64,000 nucleotides of DNA from Podarcis melisellensis (taxonomy: Eukaryota): assembly GCA_964234715.1 (NCBI GenBank), contig OZ174283.1; one strand, given 5' to 3'. This document shows positions 6,989 through 52,025 of the stretch, one piece after another. The number at the start of each line of letters is the position of its first letter. Position 1 is the first letter of the stretch. Made by a program: the position numbers and the translations under genes. The notes under the pieces are model-generated. The model saw nothing but the letters and a program-made list of their open reading frames with translations, ran no database searches and had not been told where the DNA came from.

Positions 6989-7474
6989 AGAGGATAGTTG
7001 CCACTCTTCCGAAATACAAAGGGGGCTCTAGAAAAGGCTTAATAACAACGCACGAATGATGAGCCAAAATGCTGAAGCCGGTGGGAACGGGAAGAGCAAT
7101 CGTGCCTGTTAAATATTTACCATGCAACTCTCAGAAAAGCCACTGACTAGAAAGGTGAGTCGATGTATTAATCAAAGTAAAGCAAACAGGTGAGCAAGTC
7201 CCTGGGAAGCAGCCAAGAACAGAGATGGAGAGAGCGAGAGGAATCTGGCCCTGGGCGCACACGCACATCCCTCAGGATGACTTCAGGGCAGCCTGGTTTG
7301 CATCAGCTGAAGCGTCTCCTTCGTCCCCCCATTGTCAAGGCAATCACGTCTCTGCCTCTGGTGTCGCCTCTCCCAGCACTGTCGCCACCGGCCCGCATGG
7401 CCCTGCCTTCCCCATCATTCGCAACCCCTCCCCTTCCCCCCTCCTACCCCGGCAGCATCCGAATTCCCTCCTCT

Positions 7475-7520
7475 GCTTCCGATTGGAAGCCACGCTCCGG
7501 GCCGCCGTCGCGATTGGCTG
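7475..7520 (+). promoter_or_regulatory. Two inverted CCAAT boxes (NF-Y) with overlapping ETS-type GGAAG motifs
   Basis: GATTGG at 7481-7486 and 7512-7517 (31 bp apart), ~175-210 bp upstream of the ATG; the first lies in GCTTCC-GATT-GGAAGC. Confidence 0.7.
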
Positions 7521-7690
7521 CGTTCCGGTGACACTCAAGAGGGCGCATCGAGGGAGGCCGGCGCGAGAAGCCGCTGCTCGCCTGCTCGCCGCCGTCCTCG
7601 TCTTCCTCCTCGCCTGCCTATATCCCCTCACGGAGCTGCTGCTGAGGCGGCGTCACCGCGCGGTCGCAGAGAGGCGCTCCGGCAGGCGCG

Positions 7691-7693
7691 ATG
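7691..7693 (+). CDS. GUCY1B1: GUCY1B1 exon 1 coding part (ATG only)
   Basis: GGCGCG ATG|GTGAGT donor inside the CpG island; joins phase 0 to the YGFVNHALE exon. Confidence 0.9.
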
Positions 7694-10600
7694 GTGAGTG
7701 CGAGGCGAGAGGCAGATGCGCCACAGGCTGCCGGGTCGCCTTTATTCGGGGAGGGGGAAAGCGGATATTTTGGCAGGGATGGGAAGGGAAGGATGCGCGA
7801 TAAGAAGCGCGGCGCAGGGGACGGGAATAGCTTCGGAGTGCAAAGCGGGTCGCGAGCGGGGAGATGCGGCCGCAGTTGGGGCTCCCCCACAGCCGCGCGC
7901 TTTTCTTTCCTGGGCACAGTCCACCTGGAAGAGGAACGGGGGTGTGAAGGGGGAATATTGGCACTCCGCTCCTTTCCCTTGCAGAGGAAGTACCCGGGTT
8001 GGTACCCATCCCCAAACCCCCCTCCTTGGCTTTGTGGTTTTGCCTGAAGCTAGGCGCTCCTGTAAGCACCATCCACCTGGAGCAGGTGAAACGGGGGGGA
8101 GGCGGGGGAGAGAATAATCGCCGCCATCCCTACCTTTCTTCCCCGTTTCTCGAACCCAACCCGGATTCGTCCCCGTGTTTCCACGCACAAGCACATCACA
8201 AGCTTCGCCCCCTTTGCGCATTTGAGAGCTTTCCACCAACGCGGCTTTCCCGCTTTCCCCCCTCTTTGGCAGTACGGATTCGTCAATCACGCTCTGGAGC
8301 TTCTGGTGATCCGGAATTACGGCCCCGAGGTCTGGGAGGACATCAAGTAAGTGGGCGCCGCTTTCACCTGCCCGAAGGGCGCGCGCGCCGGCTCCCCTCT
8401 CCTTCTTCCCGCGCCCTGTGAGGGAACGGCGCGACCTTTCCCGCCGCCTTCCTCCTGAGGGGACTCTTTTTCCCCTCGCCGGGTTCTCACGCTCCGAAGG
8501 GGCGCCGGCAGGAGGCCGAGGGAGGGAAGCCTCTCCCGGGGGAGAGAGAGAACGAGACGAAGGGCCAGCAGGGCGGCCCTGGTCTCCCGGGTCTTCGCAG
8601 CCGGCAGCGGGCCCGTGGGAAGAGGCGAAGCCAGCCGCCTCCACGAGACCCGGCTCCGCAGCTGGTGGGAAAACGAAGTGGGCCGCGAGGAGGAGGAGGA
8701 GGAGCAGGAGGCCTGTGGACTTGCCGCACTTCCCACGGCGGCTGCCTTCCAGGAGATGAGGGCCGTCGACTACCCAATGTCTCGCCTCGGCCGCCAGACC
8801 GCAGGGCAGGCCCCAGGCTCCTATGGGGCGCGCAAGCCCCGCTGTGCTCGGTTGGAGAATCGTAGAGTTGGAAGGGACCCCCAGGGTCGTCTAGTCCAAC
8901 TTCGTGCAATGCAGGAATCTCAGCTAAAGTATCCATGACAGATGGCCATCCATCTCATTTACAGCTGAGAAGGAAAATATGCCTTGAAAAGTCACAGTAA
9001 ACTCATACCTTACTTATCAAAAACACAGGAAAGGTCATAAACACAAGGATTGCAGGGTCTCTGGAACTCTTCTTGAAGTTTTTAAAAGCAAAACGGGGAG
9101 CCGTATTTGCGTGTCCATTGTTTACTATGCACACAAAAAGGAGTTTGGGAGAATCTGAAAGCTTAATGATGTTTGAGTTGGTTCTGATCATGATTATTAT
9201 CTTACTGTGGGCTCTTCATAGAACTGGCCTGTAAATTATTCTTCAGCAACCTCTCTGATTTCACACATGTTTTGTGAGTGTTGAAGATTAGCACCAAGAC
9301 AATATAAGCATATAAGAGGATGCTTTTCAATCAAATCCACATTCCCTTCCATGTAGGTTGCACAGTTCACAGAAATTGAAAAGGGCTTTTAAATGTGAGA
9401 TGAGTAATTGAAAGCGTGAGTTTGCTATGCATATATAAGGGTGAAGAGGTATTCTTGTGCTATATGCATTATGCTATCTGCACAGCCTTGCAGATTTGTT
9501 CTTTGTATTAATTCTCAAGAATGATCTCCATTTCCCCATTACTGAATTTAAAACAAAAACACCTCTTTGACATCATTCAGAAGCATATACTGAAACAGTG
9601 AACAAATATGGAATTTTGGAGCACATTGTCATCAGTATGCTGATGGCATACAGCTCTACATCTCCATAACATCTGACTCAGAGGCTGTGAAAGCTCTGGG
9701 CTGGTGTCTAAATGCAATGGTGGAATGGATGAGGGCCAATAACCTGCTTGAATTTTGCGAAGATATAGGCTCTTTCGATGGGTGGTTCCCATGTCCATCA
9801 CGTTACCTGTTCCAGATGCTGACAACTTTTTTATTCCATCAGCCTCATGCAGACAATTAAGAATACATTTTCCCACCATGGTTTGTTGATTTCTGAATTT
9901 AATTTTTTACATGATATTTATTGTATGGTTTTATGTAAAGTTGTTATAAACTGCCCTGAATTTTTTTTTTATGAACAGTGATACAGAAATAGTTTTTTAA
10001 AATAAACACGTAATCTTGAATTCACACACAGATGCATCTAGCTTCTCAGAATCACCATTTTGTATTTAATCAGTGCCTTTGGTCATGTGCAGAATGCATG
10101 TCTAATACCAGTCAGCCACTATAGCACAGTCAGTCCAGGGGGCCAACCTTGCTTTACAAAAATATCAGCTTACTTTAAGTATCATGCAAGGAAAGTGTGT
10201 CAAAGAGAAGAACTTAAGTGATACATCCTCTCTCAAATCTACTCTGCTCACATTCACTTTTTTTTTCATCCAAAGGGATGGAAAAGAGGAATGGAAGAGC
10301 AATTACGCCATCCCAGTGCTTTTATTTCCTTCCCAGAATCTCAGCAGACTCCATTTATCAATCATGATCCTGCAAGAGAGTGGCAGGGGGTAAAGAGAGA
10401 ATTTTTTTTTTAAAAAAAAGCAAAACGAAGTGCTATTCCTATTCCCATACAGTTCCATACATTCTAACGTTTGTAGCAGAAAAATGTACAGTGGTACCTC
10501 CGGTTGCGAATGGGATCCATTCCAGAGGTTAGGTTGCATCCCGAGGAATTCGCAACCAGAGGACCACTTCTGTGCATGCGCGCAGTGTGGTTTAGTGCTT

Positions 10601-17767: not shown

Positions 17768-17801
<34 letters not shown>

Positions 17802-26800: not shown

Positions 26801-29800
26801 CTCAAGGTATTATTGAGGGAGCATCTTCCAGTTTTGAGCAATTAGTATGTTAAAGGTAAAGGTACCCCTGACCATTACGTCCAGTCATGGCCGACTCTGG
26901 GGTTGCGGCGCTCATCTCGCTTTATTTGCCGAGGGAACCGGCGTACAGCTTCCAGGTCATGTGGCCAGCATGACTAAGCCGCTTCTGGTGAACCAGAGCA
27001 GCACACAGAAACGCCGTTTACCTTCCCACCGGAGCGGTACCTATTTAACTACTTGCACTTTGGCATGCTTTCGAACTGCTAGGTTGGCAGGAGCAGGGAC
27101 CGAGCAATGGAAGCTCAACCCGTCACGGGGATTCGAACTGCCGACCTTCTGATCAGCAAGTCCTAGGCTCTGTGGTTTAACCCACAGCGCCACCCACATC
27201 CCAAATAGTATGTTAGCTGCTGATATAAAATGAAAACTGACTCTGTTTATTCCAGACTTCCTTCAAATAATTTAAGATTGCTGTCTCTGGATTGTATGGT
27301 ATCTTTATACCTAGCATACTCTGAACCTTCTCAGCTAATAAGCTACTGCAATATTTATTATTTGGCTATGTTTCCCACATACATATATTTATTTTATATT
27401 TTTGCTGTGCTTTGTTTTAGGCGGGAGGCACAATTGGATGAAGAAGGGCAGTTTCTAGTTAGAATTATTTATGATGATTCAAAAACATACGATCTGGTTG
27501 CTGCGGCAAGCAAAGTCCTTAGTAAGTATATCTTTATTTCCTTCAGCACTGATGAACATTTAAGGAAAAACTGAAGTTTACATGTAGTTAGTTCACAGTG
27601 TTTGTTGATTTGCATTAATGCATTTATTGCGTTGTAGTTTTTCATACCACACAAGCATCATGGGAATGTCAGTTTTCATTGCTAAAAGAAAGAGAAGGTG
27701 CTTGCATTTCAAATGCTTCAAAACAAAATTGAAGTACACAAAAATAGAACTCAGAGAAGTCTATGACAGTGGAATCTTGCAATAAAATATTAAAAGCCCG
27801 ATGCATTCATCTTCCTCAGTGCTGATTAGGAAGTATTAAATGTGATTTTTTTTTGTTCTGCATGGGGCTTCAGTGCCTTCATGTACTATATAATGCTTCA
27901 TGTTTTCTTTAGACCTTAACGCTGGAGAAATCCTTCAGATGTTTGGGAAGATGTTTTTTGTGTTTTGTCAAGAATCTGGTTATGACACCATCTTGCGTGT
28001 GTTGGGCTCCAATGTCAGAGAATTTTTGCAGGTAAGAAATATGTGGCAAACCATTAATGGTCAAATTCCAGTGTAATTTCTCGATGACAGCAGCAGCTGT
28101 GGCCCAGTGTGGCCTTGGGCAAACTTGAGGTGAGGAGGCAAAAACCTTCCAAGCATCTGGTTGGTCAGCATCATCGGCCCCAGCCAGTAAAGGGGTCCAA
28201 GGGTTTGGTCCATATGCCCACATGACATGGTAACCTCCAAAGGCAATGCAATCCAAAGGCAAAACCTACAACCTCCAGTGACATGGTAACCTCCAAAGGT
28301 TACCATGTCATTTATTGTTTCCTAGACCCCTCAGGGTTGTTGCATTTGGACCAGCATGTTTAGTAAAACCAAGTCTGTTGAGTTCCATGGGACTTAACTC
28401 TTGCAGTACATGTTCATTGAATTTCAAATGAGAAATCTATTGATTTATGGCTATTCTCTTAGGCAATAATTAGTGCTTTGCTGCACTGACTACCTATTCC
28501 ATAAAGAAACTGATTTTACAATTCACATTTAAGAACTGAATTAACACACTCATTCAGGAAAACCTACCTACCAGTTTGCATTTGTGCCATCTCAAGTTAA
28601 GGCTCCAGTTGCACACTAAATTATGCATGAACACATTCTTTAAATTAAAAGGAATACAAATATGTGAAACTTAATTTGAAAGGCAAGCAAAAAGAAAGAA
28701 AGAAATATAATTAGTATTTTAAAAAATATATACAATTCTGGAGCCAACTGACAATTCCCAGGTAAGATCCACCCTCTGTTGTGTGGGCAGGGCGGTCCCT
28801 CCCCCTACTTGGCTAATCCCCTGGCAACGCCTCCCCAGGTGGGATTGAGGTAGGTGGAGACCTCCAGGTTTCCAGCCTGGGGAGGGCGAAGCCAGCCCAT
28901 ACTGCCAGGAGCCGCATGGGATCTGGGGGGGGGGGCTGCATGTGACCATGCAAAAGTCGCCCCCATTTGATACAATTCTTCCTTTTTATATTATGTAGGG
29001 CTGAAAGCATTACTAATGGAAATACAAAGCAGAATGTTAAAGAGAGGCAGCTTTTAGATAAGTGCAATTTGAGAAATCCCAAGGGCATTATTATGTTATA
29101 ACCACACACACAAAAATCAATCAGACACCAAGTGGTGCTTAACCTAAGATACTTTAGGGAGTAGTTTATTTGCCTTCTCATATTTTAAAATTAGCAATGC
29201 AGTATATGTTCTATGGCATTTTACAGCACTCAAAAGAATTGCTTGCAGAATATGTTCTACAATGTGCCCCAGAGCTTATTTTTCCATTTTACGCTGCATA
29301 TACCCAAAACCTATCTACTTAAGGAACACACTGGCCAGTTTACATGTAACACGAACCCATGGCTAAGTGTGAACATGCAAGTAAAGTCATACCTCATGTT
29401 ATGGATGCTTCAGGTTATGTGTTTTTGGGTTACGGACCATGGGAAACCTGGAAGTACCAGAATGGGTTACTTCCGGGGTTTGCTGCTTGCGCATGTGCAG
29501 AAGTGCCGAATTTCAGGATGTGAATGCTGCGGGTTGCGGACGTGCCTCCGTCATAGATTACGTCCGCAAACCAAGGTTCCACTGTACTCTTGCTTACTGG
29601 CAGCGAACTCTGTGTTGGGAAGCCAGGTAAGGAACATGACTTCACCCCACTGGCTGCTACTGTTTGGGGTGAGTTTTAGCCCAGATGATGTTCTAGCCAT
29701 ATCTTTGCCCTACTGGCTCCATTTAACACCAGCCAATAAGAGCATGGGGCACTGACTTCCTTCTCCTCCCCACATTTTCACCTTTCACTGATCATAATTT

Positions 29801-32800
29801 GCATTTGCTCAAAGAACTGTATCCAAAATATTCCATTGGTTTGTTACTAATGTCTCTTACATTACCCCCCTTCCAGACTCCTACTTCCCACTTCCTTTTT
29901 GCTTTCCCCCCTCCCCTTTTGATGGACAAGCTGCCTTTGGAAACTCAAGAGCAAAAGGAACAGGTGCTGCTTAACCCAACCCCTTTCCTGCCATTTTCCC
30001 ATTCAAAATTTGCACCTTCCCAAGCTGCTTTTCCACCCATGGAGGAAAATATATCAGACCCCCGTATACTTTACCATTGTATGGGGAAAAGAAGCTAGCC
30101 TAAAGAGCTGCTATTATTTTGAGTGTTCAAATGGCAGAAAGGGAAACAGTTAATTAGCCCCTTCTCCCATCATTTCTCTGTTGAAGCTGGAAGTTGCTTT
30201 CCTGAAGTATTTACATGGCATGGTCATACATCTTTCACTTAAGCCCTAAGAAACTGTTAACATATCTTTCTGAGTGTCTATACACATGTGTACATGAACC
30301 TGTTATCTTAAACCCATGTCCATGTAGCTATTTCTTCATAGCATCTTGGAAAAATAGACCAATGAGCAGCTTAGTAAGCGTCCGATCCACAAGACTGAAC
30401 TGGAAGGAAGCAGAGAATGAAACAGCCTGAGTTGGGAATACTGAGCAAATTGGGGGGCTGAGAAGTACCCAGTTACAGAAAATGGACTTCCTGGTTAGTG
30501 GGGAATCATGGTACCCAGGGTAATTTTATTAAGGGCAGAACTGGCTAAAAGGGAAATTGAATGGCAAAAAGGCATGTGATGAGCTATCATTAGTTACCAA
30601 AATGATTCTTCCTGCTAGAAAGTGGCAGGGAGGTTACAAGGGGTCTCTGGGCCAATGAGACTACGCTGTGGTCTGCATTGGGGCATTTTCACAGGAAATG
30701 TAAATTTAGGCAATCCAATTTCCAGGAAAGGGTTTTACTGAATGGTGCTCTTTGATTACTGCCCAGAATTAATTTAATGCTAAGTAAGGTTTCTTACTTA
30801 ACATTAGATTTGACAAAAGTTTCAGGAACCAGTTAGAACCACATACACAAATTCTCCTGTACAGGCACCACTGTGAAGAGGATTCTTGAGAGGAGCCACT
30901 GGACTATCCCATAATACTAAGCTTGAGCTTTCTTTATTGTGAAAGGTTTAGCTTGAAATACGGTCACTTTCTCTGACTCCTTTGGAAGAGTGCCACGCTC
31001 CTTAGTCAGACAAAACCAAAATACAAGCGTAGTCTTGAGAGCGGAATTTCTCAGTAACAAAAGAGTCTTGAAACAGGCCTTTGGAATGGGTTGATCTTTC
31101 CCTACAGCCATCATAGTAATCCATTCAGACAAATGCATGGGTTAGTATGCTGGCTATTGATAAAAACCATCTCAATAAAATGTAAATTTCAAATAAGCAA
31201 ATAAAGTAAACCAGGAAGCTCTAAGCTGAGTTTAGCCCAAGGAATTAATTTACAAGATACTCATTTCCTTTGGAGACCTCCCAAGAGAAGAAGCAGCTGT
31301 TGAGGCTTTTCATTTCTCACAGAAAATAAAGTTCAAGCTATTTCCAAAGTTTTGAGGATCTGCAGATGCTCTGTAATACAGCTTGCTCTTATAAAACATT
31401 GTCATTATTTATTATGTTTTAAAAACATCAGCGCCCATATGAACATTAATGGCATTAGAAAATGCAGAAGGACGAGACAGAGCAGGTAGCAGTGCTTGTG
31501 CTACTGTATAGAGCAGAATTTGGTACAAATATTCTTCAGGCAGTTATGTTGCCTTCAAACATCATTCACTTTTCCAGTGAAAATGCTGGAAAAATAGGTT
31601 TTAATCATTTTCTGTTATTAAATAATCTCCTTACAGAACCTTGATGCTCTTCATGACCACCTTGCTACAATATACCCAGGTATGCGTGCCCCTTCCTTTA
31701 GGTGTACTGATGCAGAAAAGGGGAAGGGACTTATTCTGCATTACTATTCCGAGAGAGAAGGGCTCCAAGACATTGTAATTGGAATCATCAAAACAGTCGC
31801 TCAACAAATTCATGGCACAGAAATAGACATGAAGGTAAGTTGTAGCATAAAGTTTCACCAACTTTTCACATGCCACAAATATATATTCCACAGGTGCTTT
31901 AATACTGTTTAACTTAAAATATTTTGTTCCCAAAGGGAAAAAGAATTAACACCACATTCTCAATGTGCTGTTCTCCCATTGTTAGACATAAAAATGCACT
32001 GTGTTATGTGTTACATGCCTGTTTCCATTGCTCTAATTATTATAGTCAAAAGTTCAAGAGCTGATTTATAGAAGCAGCAGTAGTCCTAGGTCATGATACA
32101 GAATATTTATTCATTCCACGCTCTTTTCACAATGTTAAAATTTTCTCCAGTATCCACTTTATGGCAGCTTGGCAACTCACCACAACCCACCACTGTAGAA
32201 CTGTATACTTGGTTTTTTTTATGAAAGAGTGGATCAGAATGGTTTCAGCGTAGCCTAAACTAGTGTCCAAGTCAAAGGAATAGCAACAGGAATGTTAAAA
32301 AGTGAGATCTGCAACAAAGTGTTGCAGTGTATCCTCACCTGGTATCATAAAATGTGATACCAATAAGGAGGGAAAAGACACATGTTCGGATTTTTTTGTG
32401 GATTTTTCAGCAGGGCAATGCATATAAATGGATTTTATATATAGTCAAAATCATAGTGTGTCACAAAGAAGAGCGTTCAAATAGAGAATATAAGGCATTG
32501 GAGCTTGTATGATTGCAAGGCTCAAATTTTCCACGCTAGATGAACTGTGTACCAGACAGCTATGACAAAATCAAATTACAGCCTGCCACCAACACAGAGG
32601 CCATGTGAAAGTCAAAGTATGTCTAATAACTCAATCTATAGAATTGTGACACATAACTGTGAAAATACAAAAATACTAGCCAGTATGATCTGGAAGTAAA
32701 CACACGCAGCCTTTTGAGTGGATAAGAAATTAAAGGAACCAAAAAAAGTCTACATTGGAGTGGTACAAAGATTGGAACATACTCCTATCTTTGTTGGTTT

Positions 32801-35800
32801 CCTATTTTTCTTCACGCAGTTGGCAAAGAGTTTGTTTTGTCTACAGCCTTCATAGATTTCTATTTTTAAAAGGTTGGGATTTATTCATTTCTTTTGCTAA
32901 ATGTCAAGAAAATTATCACAATAGCACTAAACTCGGGGAAATTGCACAAAAAGTATTTAGCCTGATAAGACACCTAGAAATCAGAATCCTTGATACTCAT
33001 TTCACCTTGATTGTCACATTTAGCTTCAGGCAAAATGAACAGAGGCGGCTGTAGGATGGGAGACATGCAAGGGCAAAAGGACAGGCTATCACAATGTAAG
33101 GAAGATTGCCAAAATAGTTGATTTTTTAAATCATTTGACTTTCTCTGCATATTTTGGGGGCTTGCTATGATTTACATAGGGAATATGGATGCCCGCCACC
33201 ACAACATGGGCATGTGACATCACACACACTATGTGCAGTTGTGTGACATTGCACATTCACATTGCAGCGGCTGGCAGCAGCAGCAGTGGCTCCTCTTCGC
33301 AGCCAGCAAGGCACCCTTTTCCACAGGGAGGTGCTCAGATTCTGTCCCCATGTCTGAGTTTCCCCATTCAGAAAAGGGTACCTCGCTGGCTAACTCTGGA
33401 GGACAGAGCTGAACTTCTTCTCTCTTGGAGGCAACACCACTGCCACCTGCCGGCTTTTCTCAATGACTTTGTAGGTGCCCGGCTCCCACAATTATATTAT
33501 TGCGGGTGCCCAGGCACCAACGGCCCCCTGGAGTTGGCTCTTATGGTAGGGACCCTGACCACCTTTGACCTGAAGCAAGCAGACAAACAAACAACAATTT
33601 ATTGGCAAATGAGCCATAAACTATGGTTAATCATAACTAACATTTTTTTGAAACAAATCAGCTTCATAAATCAAGGTTTGTAGTTGGTTTGCTACAGTAA
33701 ACCATAGTACAGACATAATGGTTTCAGACGTAATTGAAGTGAAAGCTTCTCTTCTTCAGGGTGTCTCTGGAAAAGGGGAAGAGAGTTTGTGAAGGTTCAT
33801 TCCTATAGTGATAAACTGTAGTTTATTGTTACAGTATGTTTGAATGCCCTCTCACATTCCTTTCAGAGGAATACCACTGTCAGTCTGTTGCAGCTGAAAC
33901 AACAGTCTTGTGGGACCATAATGTCCAAAGGATTTATTCTGATACAAGCAGTTGTGGACTAGAATCCACTTTATCCTATGTAGTGTTAAATCAATGATAA
34001 ATCAATAAGTCTTTACGTCCCATAAGACAAAAACATCTGATGAGATGTTTTTGTCTCATCAAAGGACACCAATTTTGGTGAAGTGTTTCATTAGTGCTGG
34101 GTCTCTTTTGAAGCTGCCATTGATCTAAACTACTACAATTGTGCAGTGAGTTAAATTTAGCTTAGGAGCTTTGTTCTGGTTGTATAAGCCAGGAGCATAA
34201 TGTCTCTTTCAAAATCTAGTTGGCATATCTGTTCTTTTAAACCATAAAAGCACACACACCACCATCGTTTGTTATTGAGCTGCCTTGGAGTATGTTAAGG
34301 AAAGGTGGGCTATAATTTTTATACATAAAAAAGTCTGACCTAAACAGGGCTCCTTCTTTGCAAGCGAATTCCCTCCACTGCAACACACACACACACACAC
34401 TCAAAGGAAATGTATTCACGTAAAAATGCTGCTTCACATATATCCTTGCCTCTCCCACAAATCTCCAGTTCCATGACAGTAAACGATCACATACCTATCC
34501 TACTTAATGTGTTTTTCCTGAAAAAAGTGAAAACATAGGACATACTACACTATTGCTTAGCATTTTCAAAAGCTAACTTTAATGCAACACAATAGACATA
34601 AGCACAAAACAATATAAAACTATCAATGTTTCCCCAAAATCTAAAAATTGTTCTGAAGGCCTTTTGTAAAGAAGTTTGAAGGCATTTTCAAAACTCTCTC
34701 CCTTATAAATGCCACTTTTCACACAGCCAAGTGGGAACATCAGTTTTGCAGAAGATTTTATTGCAAAGCACAAGAGGAAGAATCTGCTAGATATCTCTTT
34801 GAGTGATTTGTCTTCATTTTTATTGCTGTTACCATGGTGAAAGAGTACGTACGCATGATTGGTTGACGTAACTTGGTAGCTAGGTCCACAGAGGGAAACA
34901 AAAATCAAACTTTATTCCTGGCTGTGTCGCTGCTGGTGATGCTCTTTCATTTATTTAATATTCCACAGTCGGGTGTTTAGCAAATTCCCGGACCTATTTG
35001 AAGTCATATAAAACTTGAGAAGCAAGGAGTTATCTAATTCTGCTTCTATGAACTTCAGATTTTTGTGTGTGTGTGTGTGTGTGTAACTTAAGTGTTTGAT
35101 TTTATGTTTTTTTAAAAAGACAATGTTATAAGTTACTTGAACATCTTTGAATAACAAGCAAATAACAAGTCTAATAAAAATAATAGTGTCATGTGTTCTA
35201 CATGAGGACGTTTGGGGCAGAAATTCAGTATTTGCAGGAGCAAGCCTCATTGGACTAAATGGAACTTGCTTCTGAGTAAACATGTAAGCAGCACAGGCAC
35301 ATATGTCTTGGTTTTAAGCGCCACCCCTCCTCAGCAGCATGTATTCTGCCAATCACATAATCTTTTTCAACAGACACTCAATTGCTTTCATTTTTTTCCA
35401 GAATACAACGGAAATGTTTCTATTGATTTCAGCTGTGCTTTGGATCAAGCACTCACTTATTTTTTAGTGTTCCGACTCCTTCATGTCCTTCCCTCTCCTC
35501 CTTTATCTCAATTGCTCTTATTCATTTCAATTCAGCTCTGTGAATTACAGTTGCAACTGTGCTATTATTGACACATACTCATTCGGTAGAGGTCATTGGA
35601 GACTGCAGAGCACTTGAACGAAACAGCAGATTGGTTTTCTGAAACTGTGGCGACTTGCTGCTGTTTAATAGTGGCAGTTTTTGAAACAGACTAGACAGTT
35701 TCATAAGTTTAGTGGCGGGGGGGGGATGCTGCTAGTATTCTGCAGGGACTTTTATAATGTACAAATCATTTGGCTTGCATGTTTTCTTTTGTTATATTTT

Positions 35801-38800
35801 CAGCATTGTCCCAGGAGGGAGGGACTTTGAATAGAAAGAGACCTCCCACCAATAAGCAATATTTGTTAACATTGCAGGCTAAGCACTTCAGCCATAATGT
35901 TTTTGTAAAACCTTTGTATTGTTTTTATTTTATTTTAATTAGGGCTGCAGTATTTAGTAAATTAATTAGTTGCATTAATAGAGTCAATAAACCTACGTCT
36001 TATCTAAAAAGGTGCAGCCGGTGAATTAGGCAGCAGATTATTTATATATTTTAAAACCCTTATTCATTTCCTGTTTTGATATTATTAAAAGCTGTGGGTG
36101 GCAGGCACCATCTTAGAAAAAACACCCCCCTTTTTATATCCCAGAATAATAAGATGGTGGAAGCTGTGACACGTGCATGTTTTCCTAAAAACTATCAAAG
36201 TGTGTTTCAGTAGCTTTGTTTTAATATACAAGTCTATGCAGATTTTATAAATTGATCAGTTAATAATCCCACTAATTTATAAAGTTAGTCATCTAAGATT
36301 CTGTTAATGAAGTGGCAGTCTATGTTTTAATGGATTATTAAAAGAGGGGTGAAAATATAATCAGGAAGTTTTTTTTTAAAGGCAGTTATATCTTGCCTGA
36401 TAAGATGAATTGTTTGATTTTCAAAATCTTGGCATTTAAAAGGGCATTGTCTGCTTTTCCACAGTCCTAATTATGAGACTTAACTACGATGGAGTGAACC
36501 ACAGGTGGAATTGGTTCAGTTAATTTTGGAACTGGTCTTGCCAGTTAATTGCTTCTGTAGCCTTCTGTGCTGTAAACTGGATCCCTACCCTTGGCTGCTC
36601 TCCATCTCGAGAAAGGAACTGAGAGTCTGACAAGACCTCAGAAGACTGGGGTAACTTTTAATCCACCTGGCCCTCATGCTATACCCTCCAGGACATGCAT
36701 CTTCCCGGGCTTGCTCCCACTTGAGTCACATGACCCATGTGAGATCACAAATCTGTGAGCTCGCAATCTCATGTGTTTCAGGGTGCCATGCTGAGAGCAC
36801 GATGTCCAAAACTCGCTTGTCCTGATTTGTCCCGGGGTAGTTGACAGGTGTGCCATGCATGGTGGTCAATACTTCTTAAAGTTGTGGCACTGCCTAGGGT
36901 TCCATTTCATTTCAAATCAGCCTTAGCCTTCAGATGGCCTGGAATGTATTTATTATTTCTTCTGCTGCTCAGTGGTCTGATGCTCTCACTGCTCTTTCTA
37001 CATTTGAACATAAGTGTCAATCTTCTTTGTATATATTAATTTGTATGTTTATGTCAGGATTGATGGAGCATTTTTTTAGTATTAATGTCAGCTGGTGATA
37101 TTTTTTTCTCTCTGCTATGTTTGCATTAAAAAATAAATAAAATGAACATATTTCTATATAGACATCCTGCTCAAAAAAACAATGAAACAGAGTTGTGGTC
37201 AATGGACCCTCAAATCCAGGGTCAAAATCTGGAATTATGAAAATCAAGAATAGCTCTTGTTCATTGCTATAGAAGAATAACCCTAAAAAAAATGTTTTAA
37301 AAAGTAAAATTGCCCATAATTGTTGTTGTAATTCGGGTTTTTTGTTGTTGTTATTCAGGTTATTCAACAGAGAAATGAAGAGTGTGACCATATTCAGTTT
37401 TTAATTGAAGAGAAGGAGTCTAAGGAAGAAGATTTTTATGAAGACCTGGACAGATTTGAAGAGAATGGCACTCAAGAGTCTCGCATCAGTCCTTATACTT
37501 TTTGCAAAGCTTTCCCTTTCCATATTATATTTGATAGGTATCTAGTTGTCACCCAGTGTGGCAATGCAATATACAGAGTCCTTCCACAGGTAAGAATTCT
37601 TATTTTACCTGAAAACCGTATACATTTTTATTCCTCGGTGCTCCCACTACACTCCTAGTATGCACTCCTAGAACTCTAAAAGACATTTCACATTAATGCC
37701 TTTAACTAATTCCATCTTTGTCTTCATAAAGTGTCATAGTCCTTCATTTCAACAGCCTTTTAACCAATATTTTAACATTTTTATTTTTAATTTATTTTAC
37801 ATCTGTTGGAATTGATCAAAGGTCTACATAGGTCCCAAATCCTTCCATATTTTGAGTCATATGACTCGTTAGTCAGATAGTTTATTAATGTGGTAAAATC
37901 TAGTACTGTGCATATGTGTTTGTGTGTCGGGGGGGGGGGTACTCCTCAACATTGTACTGATAAATTAGCATAGATAGAGCATTGGGAAACAGAATTCAAA
38001 TGCTACACATGATATAGAGTATAAATAACTTCAGGTCTTTGAAATGAAATTTGTCTGTCTCATTTATATTTCAGCTCCAGCCAGGGTATTGCAATCTTTT
38101 GTCAGTGTTTTCATTGGTTCGGCCTCATATTGATATTAGTTTCCATGGAATCCTCTCACATATCAACACAGTCTTTGTGCTGAGGAGCAAGGTAACCATA
38201 CTGTTCACCTGCCATTTTTCAATGATAATCATGTTTTACTTGGATAAACAATAGAACCTCAAATTTCTTTACCACATTTTGACATGTTTCTGCTTGGGTG
38301 AAACAGAAGTAAAAACAACCTTTGACTGCGGATAGCATTAAAGTAGTTTGTGGAAAGATATGAAAACATACAGACATAACTATGACACCTTTAGCTGCAG
38401 TTATGGGTTTTGGTTTTTTTCTTTACAAGGAAGGGCTGTTGGATGTGGAAAAGTTAGAGTGTGAAGATGAATTAACTGGAACAGAAATTAGCTGCTTACG
38501 CCTTAAGGGTCAAATGATCTACCTACCAGAAGCAGATAGTATTCTCTTTCTTTGTTCTCCAAGGTAAGCAAACACAGTTTGTGTATATTGCAGTGCATTG
38601 TTACAAAAACTTGTACAGTAACTCACATCTTACATGAGGGTTCGGTTCTAGGAGTCCACATGTATATCTAAAAATGCACAGGGGCGTGGGTGGTGCTGTG
38701 GTCTAAACCACTAAGCCTCTTGGGCTTGCCAATTGGAAGGTCGGCAGTTCAAATCCCCGCAATGGAGTGAGCTCCCATTGCTCTTTCCCAGCTCCTGCTA

Positions 38801-41800
38801 TCCTAGCAGTTTGAAAGCATGCCAGTGCAAGTTGATAAATAGGTACTGCTGTGGCAGGAAGGTAAATGGTGTTTCCATGCGCTCTGGTTTCTGTCACCGT
38901 GTTCTGTTTTGCCAGAAGTGGTTTAGTCATGCTGGCCACATGACCCGGAAAGCTGTCTGTGGACAAACACTGGCTCCCTCAACCTGAAAGCGAGATGAGC
39001 GCTGCAACCCCATAGTTGCCTTTCACTGGACTTAACTGTCCAGGGGTTCTAAAAATGCATAAAGCCAGGAACCTAGAGTCCCTCCCCCACCTACTTTCCA
39101 ATGCCCAGTAAGTTCTCGCCCAGATTTGGGGAGGAGGCTTTGCCTTACACTGCCTTCCCTAAGCCAAGTAAGCCCACAATCACAGCTCTGTGCAGGTGGG
39201 TCAGGGGGAAATGAATAAATGTAGGGTGGGCTTCCTCTGCTCTCCATTTGTTTATTTAACCCCCCCACCTGCTCCCCCCCCAAGGAGCTTCATGAAATGA
39301 TTTAGATTGGGAAAATGGTCAAAGCCTCTTTCTCACCACCACTGCTTTGATGGGAGGTCTAGACATGGATCTCCTTAATCACCTCTGTTTTGGCCGTTTG
39401 GCTTAAACATTTCCAGGACAACATTCTTCTGGCACAGTAACATAAGCCCATTAATGGCAGAACTTGCTAGTTTCAGATATAGTGATCTGCATCTGCTCTG
39501 TGCCTTCTTATTCCCTATAATCCTCTGTTATGATATGTGAAAGAAGGTCTTTGAGTAGCAGGCAAACTCACAGCACTATCACATCATGGTGTTTCTGTAG
39601 TGATTTTAATTGTTTGATCGCACTTCTCCATTCTCAGCTTTATCTCTCCTCCCTGTGTTGACAGGGTAGAAAAGGCGGCATATTCAGTGCATATTAAATA
39701 GTGAGGTAGAGGTTCTCTCTTACTTTGGAGTAGTGTCAAAATATATTTGCAAATTAACTTGATCAGTGTTTTTAATGGCTGTGCAAGACAAATCTGAGTG
39801 CCAGGTTTAACCCACCATTTCCCCAACTGGTCTTTTGATTATTTGTATTACAGTGTGATGAATTTGGATGACTTAACTAGAAGAGGGCTATATCTGAGTG
39901 ACATTCCACTGCATGATGCTACCCGTGATTTGGTCCTTTTGGGAGAGCAGTTCAGAGAGGAATACAAGCTGACTCAAGAGCTGGAGATACTAACAGACAG
40001 GCTTCAGCACACATTAAGAGCACTGGAAGATGAGAAGAAAAAGACAGACACGTAAGAGTTTATCTCTCAAGTTTACATGAGAAATGGTGGAAGTAGTGGA
40101 ATTATTTTCCGTCTTAACCTGTATTTTGAGGCTTCACAAACACATCTGATTTTGAATTGTCCTGTTAGTCAGTGACTCTTTACCGCATGCATTATTGCCA
40201 TAATTCTTGTATAATTATTAATGAACTTCTTGAATGGATGTCCCTGTCAACCTCTGTCTAAGATCTGATTCTGACCTATTAAAAGTTTTATATCATGCAT
40301 GTCCCTGTATTATTCCTCCCACCTTCTGTATTATGAGGCTGCCATTCACCTAATGATTACCAGTTTAACTTAGTGGAATAGTTAATATTTTATGAATCAC
40401 TATTATGAAACTATGGTGTTTCGTTTTAGAAATGTTGACATTTTGGTTTAAGAAGTTCCTACCTTGGACAGGATAGCCTTCTCAGTCTTGGTATCAGTGA
40501 TGTGGGGCTGACTCACACATCACACTGATTGTAGAGATACCAGCCACCAGAAGATTCCAGCAGGTGCATGCAGGTCCTTATTGTAATGGCGGCTGTCCAC
40601 ATTCTAAGCTGTTCTGAATGTCATAGGTAGGCCAGGAATCACTGTTTACAGTAGCGAGCATCTGACATAGTCACTGACCCTCTTTAATAGTTTTATGCCT
40701 TCTGACAATCTGAATATGATTACAAATTGGAGCTGGTATGTGAAAATAAGGACACAAACAAGTTAAATGAAAATTAATACCTATTAACTCATTCAGAATA
40801 CTATATTAAGTCACTGAATAGCTGTGTAAACTGTATTTCAGTGGGCTCAAAATGAAAGCATTCTGGAAGGCTTCATGTACTAATCTTTGAAGGAAAGCAT
40901 CCCCTTTTATTGTTATCTCCCTTCATTATCTTTCTTTTCTCTGTTTTCTTCCCTCTGTCTGTTTTCCCTCAACGTCTCATTAGCTTTTATGTCTTGGATC
41001 CTAATGTTTGTTTACTGGCACATAATCTATCTATCACAACCTGAATCAGTTGAGCTTTCAGAATAATAAAATATTTCTGGACACCACAAAAACTTAGGAA
41101 AAAGCTGGCTCGGGAGATCTTTGTTTAATTTGCGTGCACATAACTTAAGGGCTAAACAAGATTCACACAATTAGCAATTATTAGGGGTAAAAGGTTAACG
41201 CTGCATGTCAGGATTCTGATCTGTATCAGGGCCCACACACTTCCAATTTGCTTTTAAAAAGCCATTCACATAATTCCTAATTGTGTGAATGGCATCTCAT
41301 CTAGTCTGAACCATACAAACTAAGTACCTTTTATGTGTAGTCTTTAGAATGAAACATTTCGCTTTTTGTGAATATTGTGCTTTGCAATTTTTTTGGGTGG
41401 TGGTGGGGAAACAGTAAATAATAAAATGTGAGCATATAACCCTCTAGCTGATAATGGATATCTCTGCTGAAATATCAATTTATCCAGACTGGAAGTGCTT
41501 GTGGGTGTGTATATTCATCTCACTGTTGCTTGTTTGACCATAGGCATTGGTGACAAGCGAAATGAATACATATAACATGGTTAACTCTGTCTCTGTTGGG
41601 CCATTTTCATTTTTCTTAAAGCTATTGCCTGTCCCCAACCATTCTCCAGATAAATCTAGAGTATGTGACTTCTTTGCAAAAGATTAAGGGCACATTCCAT
41701 GGAACATTACGTATTTTTATGTACCATCAATTTCAACTACAGAGATTTAAGCACACGTCCTTAAGAGTTTAGCAGTGCTTTCTCATACCTATATAGTTTT

Positions 41801-44800
41801 GCCCATTTTATCTTTCAGTATTCTAGGAACATTTTTAATGCACACCAATGTCTGGTGCTTAAAGAGTATTACTTCTGCCATTAATAATTTTTTTAATAAG
41901 TGACTGTTGGAAACCTAAAATGTAAAAAATCCGCTTTCACATGAAAACCTCATTACACAAAAAAATGACTCATGTTTTTCTCTTCCTTTTTCTTTCTTTA
42001 CTATTACTATCCAACATTATGTAGCTTGCTGTATTCTGTCCTTCCTCCATCTGTGGCCAATGAGCTGAGGCACAAGCGCCCTGTGCCAGCAAAGCGCTAT
42101 GATAATGTGACCATACTTTTTAGTGGCATTGTTGGGTTTAATGCCTTCTGTAGTAAACATGCCTCTGGAGAGGGAGCCATGAAAATTGTCAATCTCTTAA
42201 ATGACCTTTACACAAGATTTGATATCCTGACTGATTCACGAAGGAACCCCTTTGTTTATAAGGTAAGCACCACTGCTTCATTTCTTATTTTTTGTTTGTT
42301 TGAGATAATGCTGCATTAAATGAAAATTAATGTAGAAACAGCCCTGTAATGATGAAATTATGAAAGAGGTGTATTATCTGAGCTCAGTTCTATGGAGTAT
42401 TAGAATTTCCCATTGATGCAATAATGGTTTAATTCTTGGCAAGAGAAAACATTGCACTGAAATAAATTTATTCTGAAGACAAAATAGCTGCATCAATGTT
42501 GATTACAGAAATTGGGGAAAGTGAGCTCCTGACTCCAAAACACTTTACTGATGCTTCTTTCTGAATCCAAATACCTGAGGCTAAGCTGTGATTTGTCTTA
42601 GTGTCATGTCCAAGTCGTGATTTGTCTCACTTGAGACAAGAAATCAGCTGTAGCCAAGGTTTGTTCTTTGTTTACTACTCATGTTTTGAGAAACAAACCA
42701 TAAGCCCATGTTCAGATGCTAAGCCAAACCATGGCTTACCTCTGGATAGTGTGCTAGTAGGAGGACTGAGAGAGGAATGCAGCCACTACAGTCTTTGCTC
42801 CAGGAACCTGCATGTTTACTTGTTCACAATTTGTTTGGGCCTCTCCCCACCCCTGATTTATTTTGTTTGTTTGATGCAACAATAGCTAGAACAGTCTCCA
42901 AGTGTTTTAGCTGATAGCGAGTTAGATAGATCAAGACTCTTGCCCCTGAAGAAGTTTGTCTTCTAAATGTATTTGGCTGGGTATATCATATGCTATAATC
43001 AATTATATTTTCCAATCTGAAATTTTGCTTGGGTTTCCTTTTTTGTTTATTTTTTGGTGCCACCCTTCCTTTCCTTCTTCATTAAGCTTTCTACACTAGG
43101 CCTCTACACTTGCTACCTATCTAAAAAATAATGTACTTTTCTCTGATTCTTCTATATTTATACCATACATTACTTTTAGAAAGCATCCTGTGATGGGGCA
43201 CAGATCAATGGGCTTCATCCAATGGAGTGCTAAGTTAAAGTCACTTGGCAGTATACTTGTGCTGCCGGAACATTGATACACATGGGAAAACACAAGCACA
43301 TTACTAAAGATGGTTGCACAACAGATTGCACAACAAACGTTTATTAGTGCAACTGTTGTGTTGGATTCCTTTGTTGTGCAACCTTTAAACTGTACCATCT
43401 CCTAGTGCAAGGGCCCTTTCTGTTTCAAAGGTATGGCTAGTGTTTGTAATAACACTGTTTCCATGTAACCAAGAAAATGGAATAACTTCCAACTTCACAT
43501 TTTATTAGGTTGAGACAGTTGGAGACAAGTATATGACAGTAAGTGGCTTGCCAGAGCCATGCATTCACCATGCACGTTCTATCTGCCACTTAGCATTGGA
43601 TATGATGGAAATTGCCGGACAGGTTCAAGTTGATGGAGAGTCTGTACAGGTTAGTAATTGACAACATGCTACTGGTCCAACTTACAAGTATGTGTAGCCT
43701 AGAAACCATGGGGCAAGATCGTACAAGACCAGTATTGGGCACTGATGCAGAATGCAACAGGGAATGGTTGAGGAATACCACCAAACTAAATATACTTCCA
43801 TGTGAGAATTAGTCCATATTTCTTCCCACCATTCTCATCAGTGCTTCCCCTTGATAGTGTGCATTGAGATTGGTGGTCTGGATCATGCTGAGGTTGTAAG
43901 GTTGTTCCTTCCCTCAAGACTGGTGCTTGGGACAGATGAAGGGGACATTTGGAGAATGTGGGTTGAGATAATACAGCAACATTGTTCCATCCTCTTGTAG
44001 GATAACTCTGTCTTTTGAAAGCTCTTTTGCTTAACAAGCACTCAGGTAGTGGCTTCACTTGTTTTATTTTTTTTAACAAAGTTTTATATATCCCTTTGTT
44101 GTAGTGAAGCTTCTAAGTCGTTTACAGAAATATTAAAATTACCAGGAAAACAATTTAGAAGTAGTTGTGCAATGGTTACATTCATCTCCCCACAAATGCT
44201 AAGCCACCTACCCACTACTTATGTAATTGTTTATTGTGCAAATGCAAAATTGCAATGCTGTATGCATTTCACTTCAAACAACTTGGTAACATCTTTTTAT
44301 TATTGTTACTGTTCATCTTTATTTTTGTTCATTTTAAAAGATAACAATAGGCATCCACACAGGAGAAGTAGTCACAGGTGTAATTGGCCAAAGGATGCCC
44401 CGTTACTGTCTTTTTGGAAACACTGTTAATCTAACAAGCAGAACAGAAACCACTGGAGAGAAAGGAAGAATCAATGTCTCTGAATATACTTACAGGTGAG
44501 AAACTGAGTGCACAGATGGCTTATAGCAATATCCAGAAAACAGCTTTCTTAGAACAATGGGCTCACTTTTTCATTTTTCATAACCACCTTATATCAGCTG
44601 GTTTTTTGGGGGGGGCACACTGCCAATACTTACCTGCATCACAGAGCAATTATAACCCCTGGCTGGGGAACAGTCAGAGTGGAGAGAGTATATCTGACAG
44701 GGTGGGAGATTTTTCTTTTTTGCTGTACCAACTCTAGGCTGCCACGATTGAGAGGTACATAGATTGTGACCTTTGGGAGATCTATAAGACTTTGGATCAG

Positions 44801-46477
44801 GCAGATACAAAATTGCTGGCAATTTGGGCCTTCCCAAAGGCTACCACAAGCAGGAAAAATGCTGCTGGAGGCTTCCTGTCTGACTGGGTACAATGAGGAT
44901 CTCCGTAGTGATGGAGCTCTCCCCTGTCATCAGAGATAATAAGAAGGTCAACTCTTCCAAATCCTAAAACCCTCCAGCTGCAAAGATCAGGGGGTTACAG
45001 TTGCATTGTTAGTGTGAGCAATTATTCCATATGGAGAAAGACAATCACCTTCAGATACTCTGGGTGTTATAGTCTCTTTAAGACATATTCTGACATCTTT
45101 AGTGTATTGCAAGTCTTGGCCCGAAAGCACTTCATGAAAGTGTATTTTGCAATTAATCATTTAGTTATATCTCTTTTTATTTGCAGGTGTCTAATGGCTC
45201 CTGAAAATTCAGACCCACAATTCCATCTGGAACACAGAGGTCCCGTTTCCATGAAGGGTAAAAAAGAACCAATGCAAGTTTGGTTTTTGTCCAGAAAGTG
45301 CACAGAGACAGAGGTATGACTAATCAAAAAGTGCTTTTAAAAAGAAGATGCACAGAATATGTATGAACAGTCAGACTCATGACAGACATTATTTTTCTTG
45401 CAAAATTCAATGTTCCCTCGAAGAAATTAACCTTCTTTTTTAAACCCATTAATATATTTCTTGACAATATATTAATTTGTCCCTGGTGTTTATGCATTTG
45501 TTAGAAATCAGGCTTTCTGCTTCAAAAAGTCAACGAGAGAGCACTAAGTCTTTAAATTTTAATCTCACACACTTTCTATGTCCTACTTTGCTGGAACTGG
45601 TATTATGCAATGTCTGTGCCTAGGAGTAGCAGAAATTTCTGACCTTGCTTCTCTTCATTTAAAATGATATTGCTGTCAGTCACCTGTAATATGCACACAA
45701 CATCCCCTTAGTATTTGTTTTCAGAAATGGATTGATTTTACCAAAACATATTTGCAATTTAGCCTTACGTAAAATTGAAAGCCACTATTTGCTGAAGCTC
45801 TAAAGTTGAAAACTCTTCACTCCAAATAAATTGCTTTAAAGTGGTAAAGTGCATAGTAATTATGGCATCCTAATGAGCAGGCTTTACTATAGAGCAATAG
45901 ATTTATATTCTAACAGATTGTGAACTGCTAGCAGAAGTAGCTAACTAATTGCTTTAGTGCGCAGTCCTAACCCCTGCCTTGCTGGGATGGAGCTTGAAGA
46001 AGCTGCACAGCCAGTGCTCCATCCCTAGTGCTCATGCCATCCAAGGCAAAAGAAGGGGGTGGCAGGAATAAAATGTCCCTCTCAGAGAACCTGCCTGAAT
46101 TGGGCCTATTGCTGCCCTACTGCTGGCATATGACAGCAGCAGAGTCCTGTTTTAAAATGGGAATTTTCTCAAACATCAATATTGTGGAATGTTCCAGATT
46201 CCACAAGGCAATTGGAGACCTCCATGAGGAGGTATTTTCTTATTTTATAGGAATTGAAACTATCAAGTGCGCTTGAGAGTAACTCCCATGGTTAAATATG
46301 GGTTAGTGTCACTACCAAGATACATAAAGTATGTGCTTCCTCAAACACCGTTTTAATTTGTTGCACCCATGTGAGAATATATTTTAACTTTTCACACATT
46401 ATTACCACAAGCTCAACTGTTTCCTTTTCAAACTTTTCTCGCATGCCTTCAAGGATGTAACGCATGATGCTAACTGA
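7691..46477 (+). CDS. GUCY1B1: Soluble guanylate cyclase subunit beta-1, whole gene span (14 coding exons, 1860 nt, 619 aa: H-NOX, PAS, coiled coil, cyclase)
   Basis: Exons join in frame through GT-AG introns (3+74+101+119+198+231+117+134+198+238+141+155+127+24 = 1860 nt) to give [28 protein letters not shown]...[17 protein letters not shown]. Heme ligand H105, YxSxR (Y135/S137/R139) and catalytic-domain E473, C541, N548, R552 are all present. Confidence 0.98.
8273..8346 (+). CDS. GUCY1B1: GUCY1B1 exon 2
   Basis: ctctttggcag|TACGGA...ATCAA|gtaagt; [25 protein letters not shown]. Confidence 0.97.
8856..8957 (-). mobile_element. CR1 LINE 3'-end fragment at the edge of the CpG island
   Basis: AGAATCGTAGAGTTGGAAGGGACCCCCAGGGTCGTCTAGTCCAAC; same terminus as 1478-1550. 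Confidence 0.75.
9600..9990 (+). mobile_element. L2-type LINE remnant
   Basis: [17 protein letters not shown] (YADD-type RT motif) at ~9615-9667, then L2-like TAAACTGCCCTGA...AAATAA end. Confidence 0.6.
10489..10704. mobile_element. Tc1/mariner (Tigger-like) MITE
   Basis: TA|CAGTGGTACCTCCGGTT...AAGCGGAGATACAACTG|TA. Confidence 0.85.
12581..12670. mobile_element. 90-bp hAT-type MITE
   Basis: TIRs CAGGGGTAGTCAACCT / AGGTTGACAACTCCTG; 8-bp TSD GTCTAGGT / GTCTAGAG. Confidence 0.8.
14065..14300. mobile_element. Tc1/mariner (Tigger-like) MITE
   Basis: CAGTGGTACCTTGG...CTAAGGTACCACTA|TA. Confidence 0.82.
15958..16042. repeat. ~85-bp imperfect palindromic MITE-like repeat (best copy of a dispersed family)
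   Basis: ACTGCAACCTTA...TAGGATTGCAGT inverted ends; similar degraded copies near 4980-5145, 12007-12080, 13575-13665, 28355-28420, 35195-35290, 49667-49757, 58230-58340. Confidence 0.65.
16230..16760 (+). mobile_element. L2-type LINE RT remnant
   Basis: [16 protein letters not shown] at ~16272-16319, degraded downstream. Confidence 0.65.
17010..17053. repeat. (AT)n microsatellite
   Basis: Direct reading. Confidence 0.98.
17341..17402. repeat. 31-bp tandem duplication
   Basis: TTTGGGATGAAAACAC(T/C)CAGAAAGGGGTGCA twice, one mismatch. Confidence 0.95.
17450..18932 (+). mobile_element. Degraded 5'-truncated CR1 LINE (RT remnants + 3' UTR)
   Basis: Broken RT motifs (...NLLEFFD...DRGD...[24 protein letters not shown]) with stops and frameshifts; CR1-type 3' end; (CA)n inserted at 17771-17798. 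Confidence 0.88.
18985..19248 (+). mobile_element. CORE-SINE (Squam3-type): tRNA head, CORE, L2-like tail ending in (CTT)n
   Basis: TGTAGTGGTTAAGAGC A-box, GCTGGGTGACCTTGGGCCAGTCA CORE motif, GCCGCTTTGAG...CTTCTCCTTCTTCT tail. Confidence 0.85.
26853..27202 (-). mobile_element. Full-length Sauria SINE in GUCY1B1 intron 2
   Basis: Reverse complement of the same family with intact GTTCGAATCC B-box; TSD TAGTATGTTA at 26843-26852 and 27206-27215. Confidence 0.95.
27421..27521 (+). CDS. GUCY1B1: GUCY1B1 exon 3
   Basis: ttgttttag|GCGG...CTTA|gtaagt; [33 protein letters not shown]. Confidence 0.97.
27913..28031 (+). CDS. GUCY1B1: GUCY1B1 exon 4
   Basis: ttctttag|ACCTT...TTGCAG|gtaaga; [40 protein letters not shown]. 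Confidence 0.97.
29425..29584. mobile_element. Partial Tc1/mariner (Tigger-like) MITE
   Basis: Internal GCGCATGTGCAGAAG motif shared with the 10489 copy; ends CCAAGGTTCCACTG|TA. Confidence 0.72.
31637..31834 (+). CDS. GUCY1B1: GUCY1B1 exon 5 (His105 heme ligand at 31652-31654, YxSxR motif)
   Basis: ccttacag|AACCTT...ATGAAG|gtaagt; [23 protein letters not shown]...LHYYSEREG...EIDMK. Confidence 0.98.
33865..34030. mobile_element. Degraded Penelope-like terminal-repeat fragment
   Basis: AGTCTGTTGCAGC...AGTCTTGTGGGACC...GTGGACTAGAATCCAC stem, followed by a partial inverted copy; related to 60400-60490. Confidence 0.5.
35064..35084. repeat. (GT)n microsatellite
   Basis: Direct reading; further (CA)n tracts at ~12352-12368 and ~34383-34400. 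Confidence 0.93.
37359..37589 (+). CDS. GUCY1B1: GUCY1B1 exon 6
   Basis: ttattcag|GTTATT...CCACAG|gtaaga; [19 protein letters not shown]...[30 protein letters not shown]. Confidence 0.97.
38075..38191 (+). CDS. GUCY1B1: GUCY1B1 exon 7
   Basis: atttcag|CTCCAG...AGCAAG|gtaacc; [39 protein letters not shown]. Confidence 0.97.
38430..38563 (+). CDS. GUCY1B1: GUCY1B1 exon 8
   Basis: ctttacaag|GAAGGG...CCAAG|gtaagc; [44 protein letters not shown]. Confidence 0.97.
38681..39047 (+). mobile_element. Sauria SINE (longer subfamily) in GUCY1B1 intron 8
   Basis: Same head and body motifs; TSD TCTAAAAATGCA at 38667-38678 and 39048-39059; tail missing. Confidence 0.93.
39854..40051 (+). CDS. GUCY1B1: GUCY1B1 exon 9 (end of PAS, coiled coil)
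   Basis: attacag|TGTGATG...GACAC|gtaaga; [32 protein letters not shown]...EDEKKKTD. Confidence 0.97.
42025..42262 (+). CDS. GUCY1B1: GUCY1B1 exon 10
   Basis: atgtag|CTTGCTG...TATAAG|gtaagc; [38 protein letters not shown]...NPFVYK. Confidence 0.97.
43509..43649 (+). CDS. GUCY1B1: GUCY1B1 exon 11
   Basis: ttattag|GTTGAG...GTACAG|gttagt; [47 protein letters not shown]. Confidence 0.97.
44341..44495 (+). CDS. GUCY1B1: GUCY1B1 exon 12 (cyclase signature)
   Basis: ttttaaaag|ATAACA...TACAG|gtgaga; [51 protein letters not shown]. Confidence 0.97.
45187..45313 (+). CDS. GUCY1B1: GUCY1B1 exon 13
   Basis: tttgcag|GTGTCTA...ACAGAG|gtatga; [42 protein letters not shown]. Confidence 0.96.
46454..46477 (+). 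CDS. GUCY1B1: GUCY1B1 terminal exon 14, coding part (DVTHDAN*)
   Basis: Pyrimidine tract ...ttccttttcaaacttttctcgcatgccttcaag|GAT GTA ACG CAT GAT GCT AAC TGA; 7 codons + TGA, the same length as and similar to the recalled human ETKQDDD* end, giving 619 aa. Confidence 0.75.
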   Translation, partial: DVTHDAN

Positions 46478-51662: not shown

Positions 51663-52025
51663 GTGGGTGGCACTGTGGTCTAAACCACTGAGCCTCTTGG
51701 AAGGTCAGTGGTTCAAATCCTCGTGATGGGGTGAACTTCTGTTACTCTGTCTGTCGCAGCTTCTGCCAACCTAGCAGTTCAAAAGCATACCCGTGTGAGC
51801 AGATAGGTACCACTGTGGTTGGAAGGTTAACGGTGTTTCCATGTGCTCTGGCACTTGTCACTGTCCTCCGTGCACCAGTAATGGTTTAGTCATGCTGGCC
51901 ACATGACCTGGAAAGCTGTCTGTGGACAAACGCCGGCTCCCTTGGCCTGAAAAGCGAGACAAGTGCCGCACCCCATAGCTGCTTTTGACTGGACTTAACC
52001 ATCCAGGGGTCCTTCACCTTTACCT
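51663..52025 (+). mobile_element. Sauria SINE (longer subfamily), intergenic
   Basis: GGGTGGCACTGTGGTCTAAACCACTGAGCC head, CACCTTTACC tail. Confidence 0.92.

Follow-up and report, generated by a model that had tools for sequence, protein, structure and literature searches.

Inverted Sauria-type SINEs around exons 3 to 8 of GUCY1B1 in Podarcis melisellensis: a long predicted duplex and, probably, a low-level circular RNA at most

A 64,000-nt stretch of the Podarcis melisellensis genome (contig OZ174283.1 of assembly GCA_964234715.1, hereafter the window) encodes on its + strand GUCY1B1, the beta-1 subunit of the nitric oxide (NO) receptor soluble guanylate cyclase (sGC), and two Sauria-type short interspersed elements (SINEs) lie in opposite orientation in the introns on either side of exons 3 to 8. 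An initial annotation of the window had predicted from this arrangement a lineage-specific 900-nt circular RNA (circRNA) with an endlessly open reading frame. The presence of the two SINEs, their orientation, their capacity to pair and the exon arithmetic are established, while any effect that they have on RNA processing is something I infer. They are probably neutral intronic insertions that yield a low-level by-product circle at most, maybe with some RNA editing or exon skipping, and detection of the exon 8 to exon 3 junction in deep total RNA is possible but somewhat doubtful. The two elements are:

26853-27202, - strand: S1, a Sauria-type SINE in intron 2, antisense to the gene, with its head at 27202
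38681-39047, + strand: S2, a Sauria-type SINE in intron 8, sense to the gene, with its head at 38681

Both heads point toward the exons, with S1 lying 218 nt from the exon 3 acceptor and S2 starting 117 nt past the exon 8 donor. The initial annotation had given the same coordinates, opposite orientation, head direction and gaps, and all of these proved correct on the sequence, by blastn and by the target-site duplications (TSDs). Its statement that these are the only two SINEs in the transcription unit holds from exon 1 to exon 13; three further copies in the window lie outside.

S1 and S2 are 74% identical over 365 columns (blastn). In ungapped columns the identity is 78.6%, falling to 71.6% when gaps are counted, and 85.5% of positions are pairable if G-U pairs are allowed. 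A repeat search returned four ungapped blocks, each 51-106 nt long, with 80-86% complementarity. The complementarity of roughly 80% estimated by eye in the initial annotation was thus fair but generous. Duplex folding of the two SINEs, which it had proposed as a check, gave a strong cofold of -511.7 kcal/mol with 291 intermolecular and no intramolecular pairs, a free-energy gain (ddG) of -270 kcal/mol over the two self-folds and a longest unbroken helix of 35 bp; shuffled partners cofolded at only -186 +/- 8.5 kcal/mol. On this folding model, S1 and S2 could form a long imperfect duplex in the pre-mRNA. A self-comparison of the window revealed no competitor repeat for S1 or S2 within their introns. 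Between exons 2 and 13, the one other significant intronic inverted pair that it found was a 23-nt perfect complement between a (CA)n run at 17769-17791 (intron 2) and a (TG)n run at 35064-35086 (intron 5). This match brackets exons 3-5; it consists of simple repeats and is probably meaningless.

The route from such a duplex to a circle would be as follows. The two SINEs, independent and fairly old insertions antisense to the gene in intron 2 and sense to it in intron 8, could pair in the pre-mRNA as a long imperfect duplex of ~290 bp. This duplex would juxtapose the exon 8 donor and the exon 3 acceptor, which is the inverted-repeat route to back-splicing. A circle, if formed, would most likely be a low-abundance splicing by-product that encodes no meaningful protein, possibly together with some in-frame skipping of exons 3-8 and some ADAR editing within the duplex.

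The assignment of both elements to the Sauria family rests on their ends and their core. S1 is flanked by a 10-nt TSD, TAGTATGTTA, at 26843-26852 and 27206-27215, and S2 by a 12-nt TSD, TCTAAAAATGCA, at 38667-38678 and 39048-39059; read in SINE orientation, both TSDs begin with T (TAACATACTA for S1 and TCTAAAAATGCA for S2). The 3' end of S1 reads ...GGGGTACCTTTACCTT with an (ACCTTT)2 tail, an ending it has in common with three other copies in the window at 563, 51663 and 61077, while S2 has no ACCTTT tail and is truncated at GGGGT. An (ACCTTT)n 3' terminus and a short TSD starting with T are features of Sauria SINEs (PMC13295347), and the supplement of the same paper contains a Podarcis muralis stretch very similar to the SINE core and tail. 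A box B-like motif is visible by eye in both heads (GTTCGAATCC in S1, GTTCAAATCC in S2); a search of the two copies for a tRNA match gave nothing at E<=1 in Rfam on either copy and nothing in ARAGORN.

Five copies of the family were found in the window by blastn, or ~1 per 13 kb. The three beyond S1 and S2 are:

563-896, + strand: third copy, ~7 kb upstream of the CpG-island exon 1
51663-52022, + strand: fourth copy, downstream of exon 13
61077-61315, - strand: fifth copy, downstream of exon 13

In the alignment, the copies fall into two subfamilies, one comprising S1 and the copies at 563 and 61077, the other S2 and the copy at 51663, which have a 17-nt and a 12-nt insertion in common. Since S1 and S2 have separate TSDs and belong to different subfamilies, they are independent insertions. 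Their CpG decay (20 versus 8 CpG) and their mismatch of 21% indicate that both insertions are fairly old. A direct repeat of ~65 bp (~91% identical, at 502-566 and 900-964) flanks the copy at 563-896, far exceeding the 10-12-nt TSDs of S1 and S2.

The host gene is, judged from its translated exons, GUCY1B1. Exon 5 translates into 66 amino acids that all (66/66) agree with residues 100-165 of human sGC beta-1, among them His105 and Y135/S137/R139, and searching the exon translations individually gave the Pfam order HNOB, HNOBA, Guanylate_cyc. This bears out the gene identity in the initial annotation and its placement of His105 and the YxSxR motif within exons 3 to 8. AG/GT sites bound all of the listed exons from 2 to 13, and frames and split codons were verified exon by exon rather than on a joined model of exons 3 to 8. 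The exons, all on the + strand, are:

7691-7693, + strand: likely end of exon 1 (ATG|GTGAGT), within a CpG island at ~7000-9000
8273-8346, + strand: exon 2, 74 nt, ends in phase 2
27421-27521, + strand: exon 3, 101 nt, starts in phase 2; its acceptor is the would-be back-splice acceptor
27913-28031, + strand: exon 4, 119 nt
31637-31834, + strand: exon 5, 198 nt, the exon matching human beta-1 residues 100-165
37359-37589, + strand: exon 6, 231 nt
38075-38191, + strand: exon 7, 117 nt
38430-38563, + strand: exon 8, 134 nt, ends in phase 2; its donor is the would-be back-splice donor
39854-40051, + strand: exon 9, 198 nt, starts in phase 2
42025-42262, + strand: exon 10, 238 nt
43509-43649, + strand: exon 11, 141 nt
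44341-44495, + strand: exon 12, 155 nt
45187-45313, + strand: exon 13, 127 nt

Intron 2, upstream of exon 3, is 19,074 nt long, and intron 8, downstream of exon 8, is 1,290 nt. Exon 13 ends in GAG|GTATGA, and reading through its donor gives ...TETEV followed by a stop. A search of 45.3-64 kb located neither exon 14, the canonical last coding exon, nor a poly(A) site; candidates for exon 14 at 46454 and 53582 were weak and not accepted.

Exons 3 to 8 sum to 900 nt and contain no in-frame stop. With exon 3 starting and exon 8 ending in phase 2, a back-splice would create the codon AG|G and the peptide P-R-R-E across the junction. The exon lengths, the total, the phases, the junction and the stop-free frame had all been worked out in the initial annotation, and the exon-by-exon check agreed with it. 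The predicted circle would encode the junction Arg plus residues 27-325, so that its product would be without H-NOX residues 1-25 and would cover the 216-position HNOBA profile up to about position 135. Five in-frame AUGs lie on the circle (at 27939, 27951, 31682, 31829 and 38514), none of which (0/5) combines a purine at -3 with a G at +4. Endogenous circles were found to yield little rolling-circle product, which the proteasome often degrades (PMC9242994). Because of these weak AUG contexts, the truncated domains and the low abundance and degradation of rolling-circle products, a functional concatemer from the circle is very unlikely. The linear alternative, which the initial annotation had not raised and in which exon 2 is joined to exon 9 and exons 3-8 are skipped, would also stay in frame: exon 2 ends and exon 9 starts in phase 2, and the junction codon is AA|T.

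How special this layout is was judged against random placement. When two SINEs are placed at random in the GUCY1B1 introns, 34% of placements put them into different introns with opposite orientations, and in 10.5% they additionally bracket a block of exons whose length is a multiple of three (3n). Such 3n blocks make up 34/78 (44%) of the contiguous blocks of exons 2-13, and in none of them does the junction create a stop. Among human circRNAs, 14% contain a rolling-circle open reading frame in the host frame (PMC9242994). The layout of S1 and S2 is not beyond chance expectation, and the stop-free frame, a consequence of the exon phases, gives no further support for the circle. As for earlier reports, a circRNA from human GUCY1B3 (GUCY1B1) in platelets is recorded in PMC5660143, while a literature search found no papers for circGUCY1B1 or circGUCY1B3 by name and nothing usable on circRNA in squamates.

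Several outcomes have to be weighed against the low-level by-product circle. An abundant, lineage-specific circGUCY1B1 of exons 3-8, lowering linear beta-1 mRNA or acting as a regulatory RNA, would be consistent with the strong predicted duplex, its proximity to the splice sites, the lack of competitors, the long upstream intron and the platelet circRNA of the human orthologue (PMC5660143). I nevertheless regard it as quite improbable, as back-splicing is generally inefficient (PMC11263572), intron 2 could be removed minutes before S2 is transcribed 11.5 kb downstream, and the majority of circRNAs are considered to be errors of splicing (bioRxiv 10.1101/2023.11.08.566217). That such a circle would be translated by a rolling-circle mechanism into concatenated 300-aa H-NOX/PAS repeats is hardly credible: its 900 nt are stop-free with five in-frame AUGs, and open reading frames of this kind are translatable in reporters and, for a few circles, endogenously (PMC9242994), but none of its AUGs has both the purine and the G in place, the truncated H-NOX and HNOBA domains would likely misfold and be degraded, concatemers are quickly degraded by the proteasome (PMC9242994), and abundant AUG circRNAs show no sign of being translated (PMC6487579). 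The initial annotation had suggested that the circle might encode such repeats or divert pre-mRNA from the NO receptor; the combined proposal that the SINE pair drives efficient circRNA production and that the circle noticeably lowers NO-receptor beta-1 output or yields H-NOX/PAS concatemers is very improbable.

The pairing might instead mainly promote linear skipping of exons 3-8, which would give an in-frame beta-1 isoform that has lost its heme-binding domain as well as most of PAS. The matching phase 2 of exons 2 and 9 and their AA|T junction codon would permit this, and complementary intronic repeats promote both skipping and back-splicing in C. elegans zip-2 (PMC8330042), but the loss of six strong constitutive exons is rare and this outcome has only a small chance of being right. 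At the other extreme, the SINEs may leave the processing of GUCY1B1 RNA entirely unaffected, with the duplex absent, unwound or edited and no circle made. DHX9 and ADAR oppose such duplexes (PMC11263572), which would favour this outcome. So would the chance expectation for the layout, and intron 2 may well be removed co-transcriptionally long before S2 exists. In minigenes, long repeats near splice sites support at least some circularisation, and repeats as long and as near to the splice sites as S1 and S2 would be expected to allow some of it here. A complete lack of effect is unlikely, if well within consideration. The reading preferred here, neutral SINEs with a by-product circle at most, finds its counterweights to repeat-driven circles in unwinding by DHX9, editing by ADAR and the lower efficiency of back-splicing compared with linear splicing (PMC11263572). 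Three features weigh against it: at 218 and 117 nt, the repeats are unusually near to the two splice sites, the window self-comparison found no intronic competitor repeat between exons 2 and 13, and intron 2, on the upstream side, extends over 19,074 nt. In mammals, repeats near splice sites, a lack of competitors and a long upstream intron are associated with repeat-driven back-splicing (PMC11263572), and a circle from GUCY1B1 could therefore exceed a trace by-product.

A demonstrated circle would add another example of lineage-specific SINEs leading to a lineage-specific circRNA, in this instance in a squamate and in the NO receptor gene. Comparative work on circRNAs would profit from it, yet no concept would be changed by it. 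The combination of an inverted SINE pair with a stop-free 3n circle recurs by chance where a genome is rich in SINEs and should weigh little without junction reads.

The sequencing runs listed number 24, none of which is recorded as RNA; 18 were kept as contigs and are guessed to be RNA. Of the words sampled from 37300-45400, where the exon share is 16.6%, four runs of one study contain 25-28%, while four other runs contain 16%. The excess in the former could represent retained small introns, pre-mRNA or capture DNA. Two further observations concern the region upstream of the gene. Rfam reports a tRNA match at 2877-2945 on the - strand (38.4 bits, above the gathering score), ~5 kb before the GUCY1B1 promoter. 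Since ARAGORN makes no tRNA call at this site, the match may come from a tRNA pseudogene or from a SINE head of a different family. An inverted repeat with arms at 1942-2083 and 2242-2383 (142 nt, 80% identity, ~160 nt apart) may be the remnant of a hairpin-forming transposon.

Among known systems, the arrangement most resembles mammalian inverted-Alu (IRAlu) pairs, in which SINEs of opposite orientation also sit in introns around internal coding exons and near the splice sites, with a long imperfect predicted duplex and a long upstream intron. Unlike IRAlu, the repeat here is a ~350-nt squamate Sauria-type SINE whose two copies are of different subfamilies and 74-79% identical, and while exon circularisation is known for IRAlu circles, the GUCY1B1 circle of exons 3-8 is a prediction from sequence. 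The human platelet GUCY1B3 circRNA (Maass et al. 2017, PMC5660143) comes from the same host gene, with exon 5 being 100% conserved in protein, but any repeats that flank the human exons would be unrelated to Sauria SINEs. In its 3n length and in a host frame that stays stop-free across the junction, the predicted circle is like circPSAP, circPFAS and circABHD12 (Fan et al. 2022, PMC9242994). Those three have mass-spectrometry and reporter evidence, whereas the GUCY1B1 circle is a prediction, and its 3n stop-free property recurs in 44% of the possible GUCY1B1 exon blocks.

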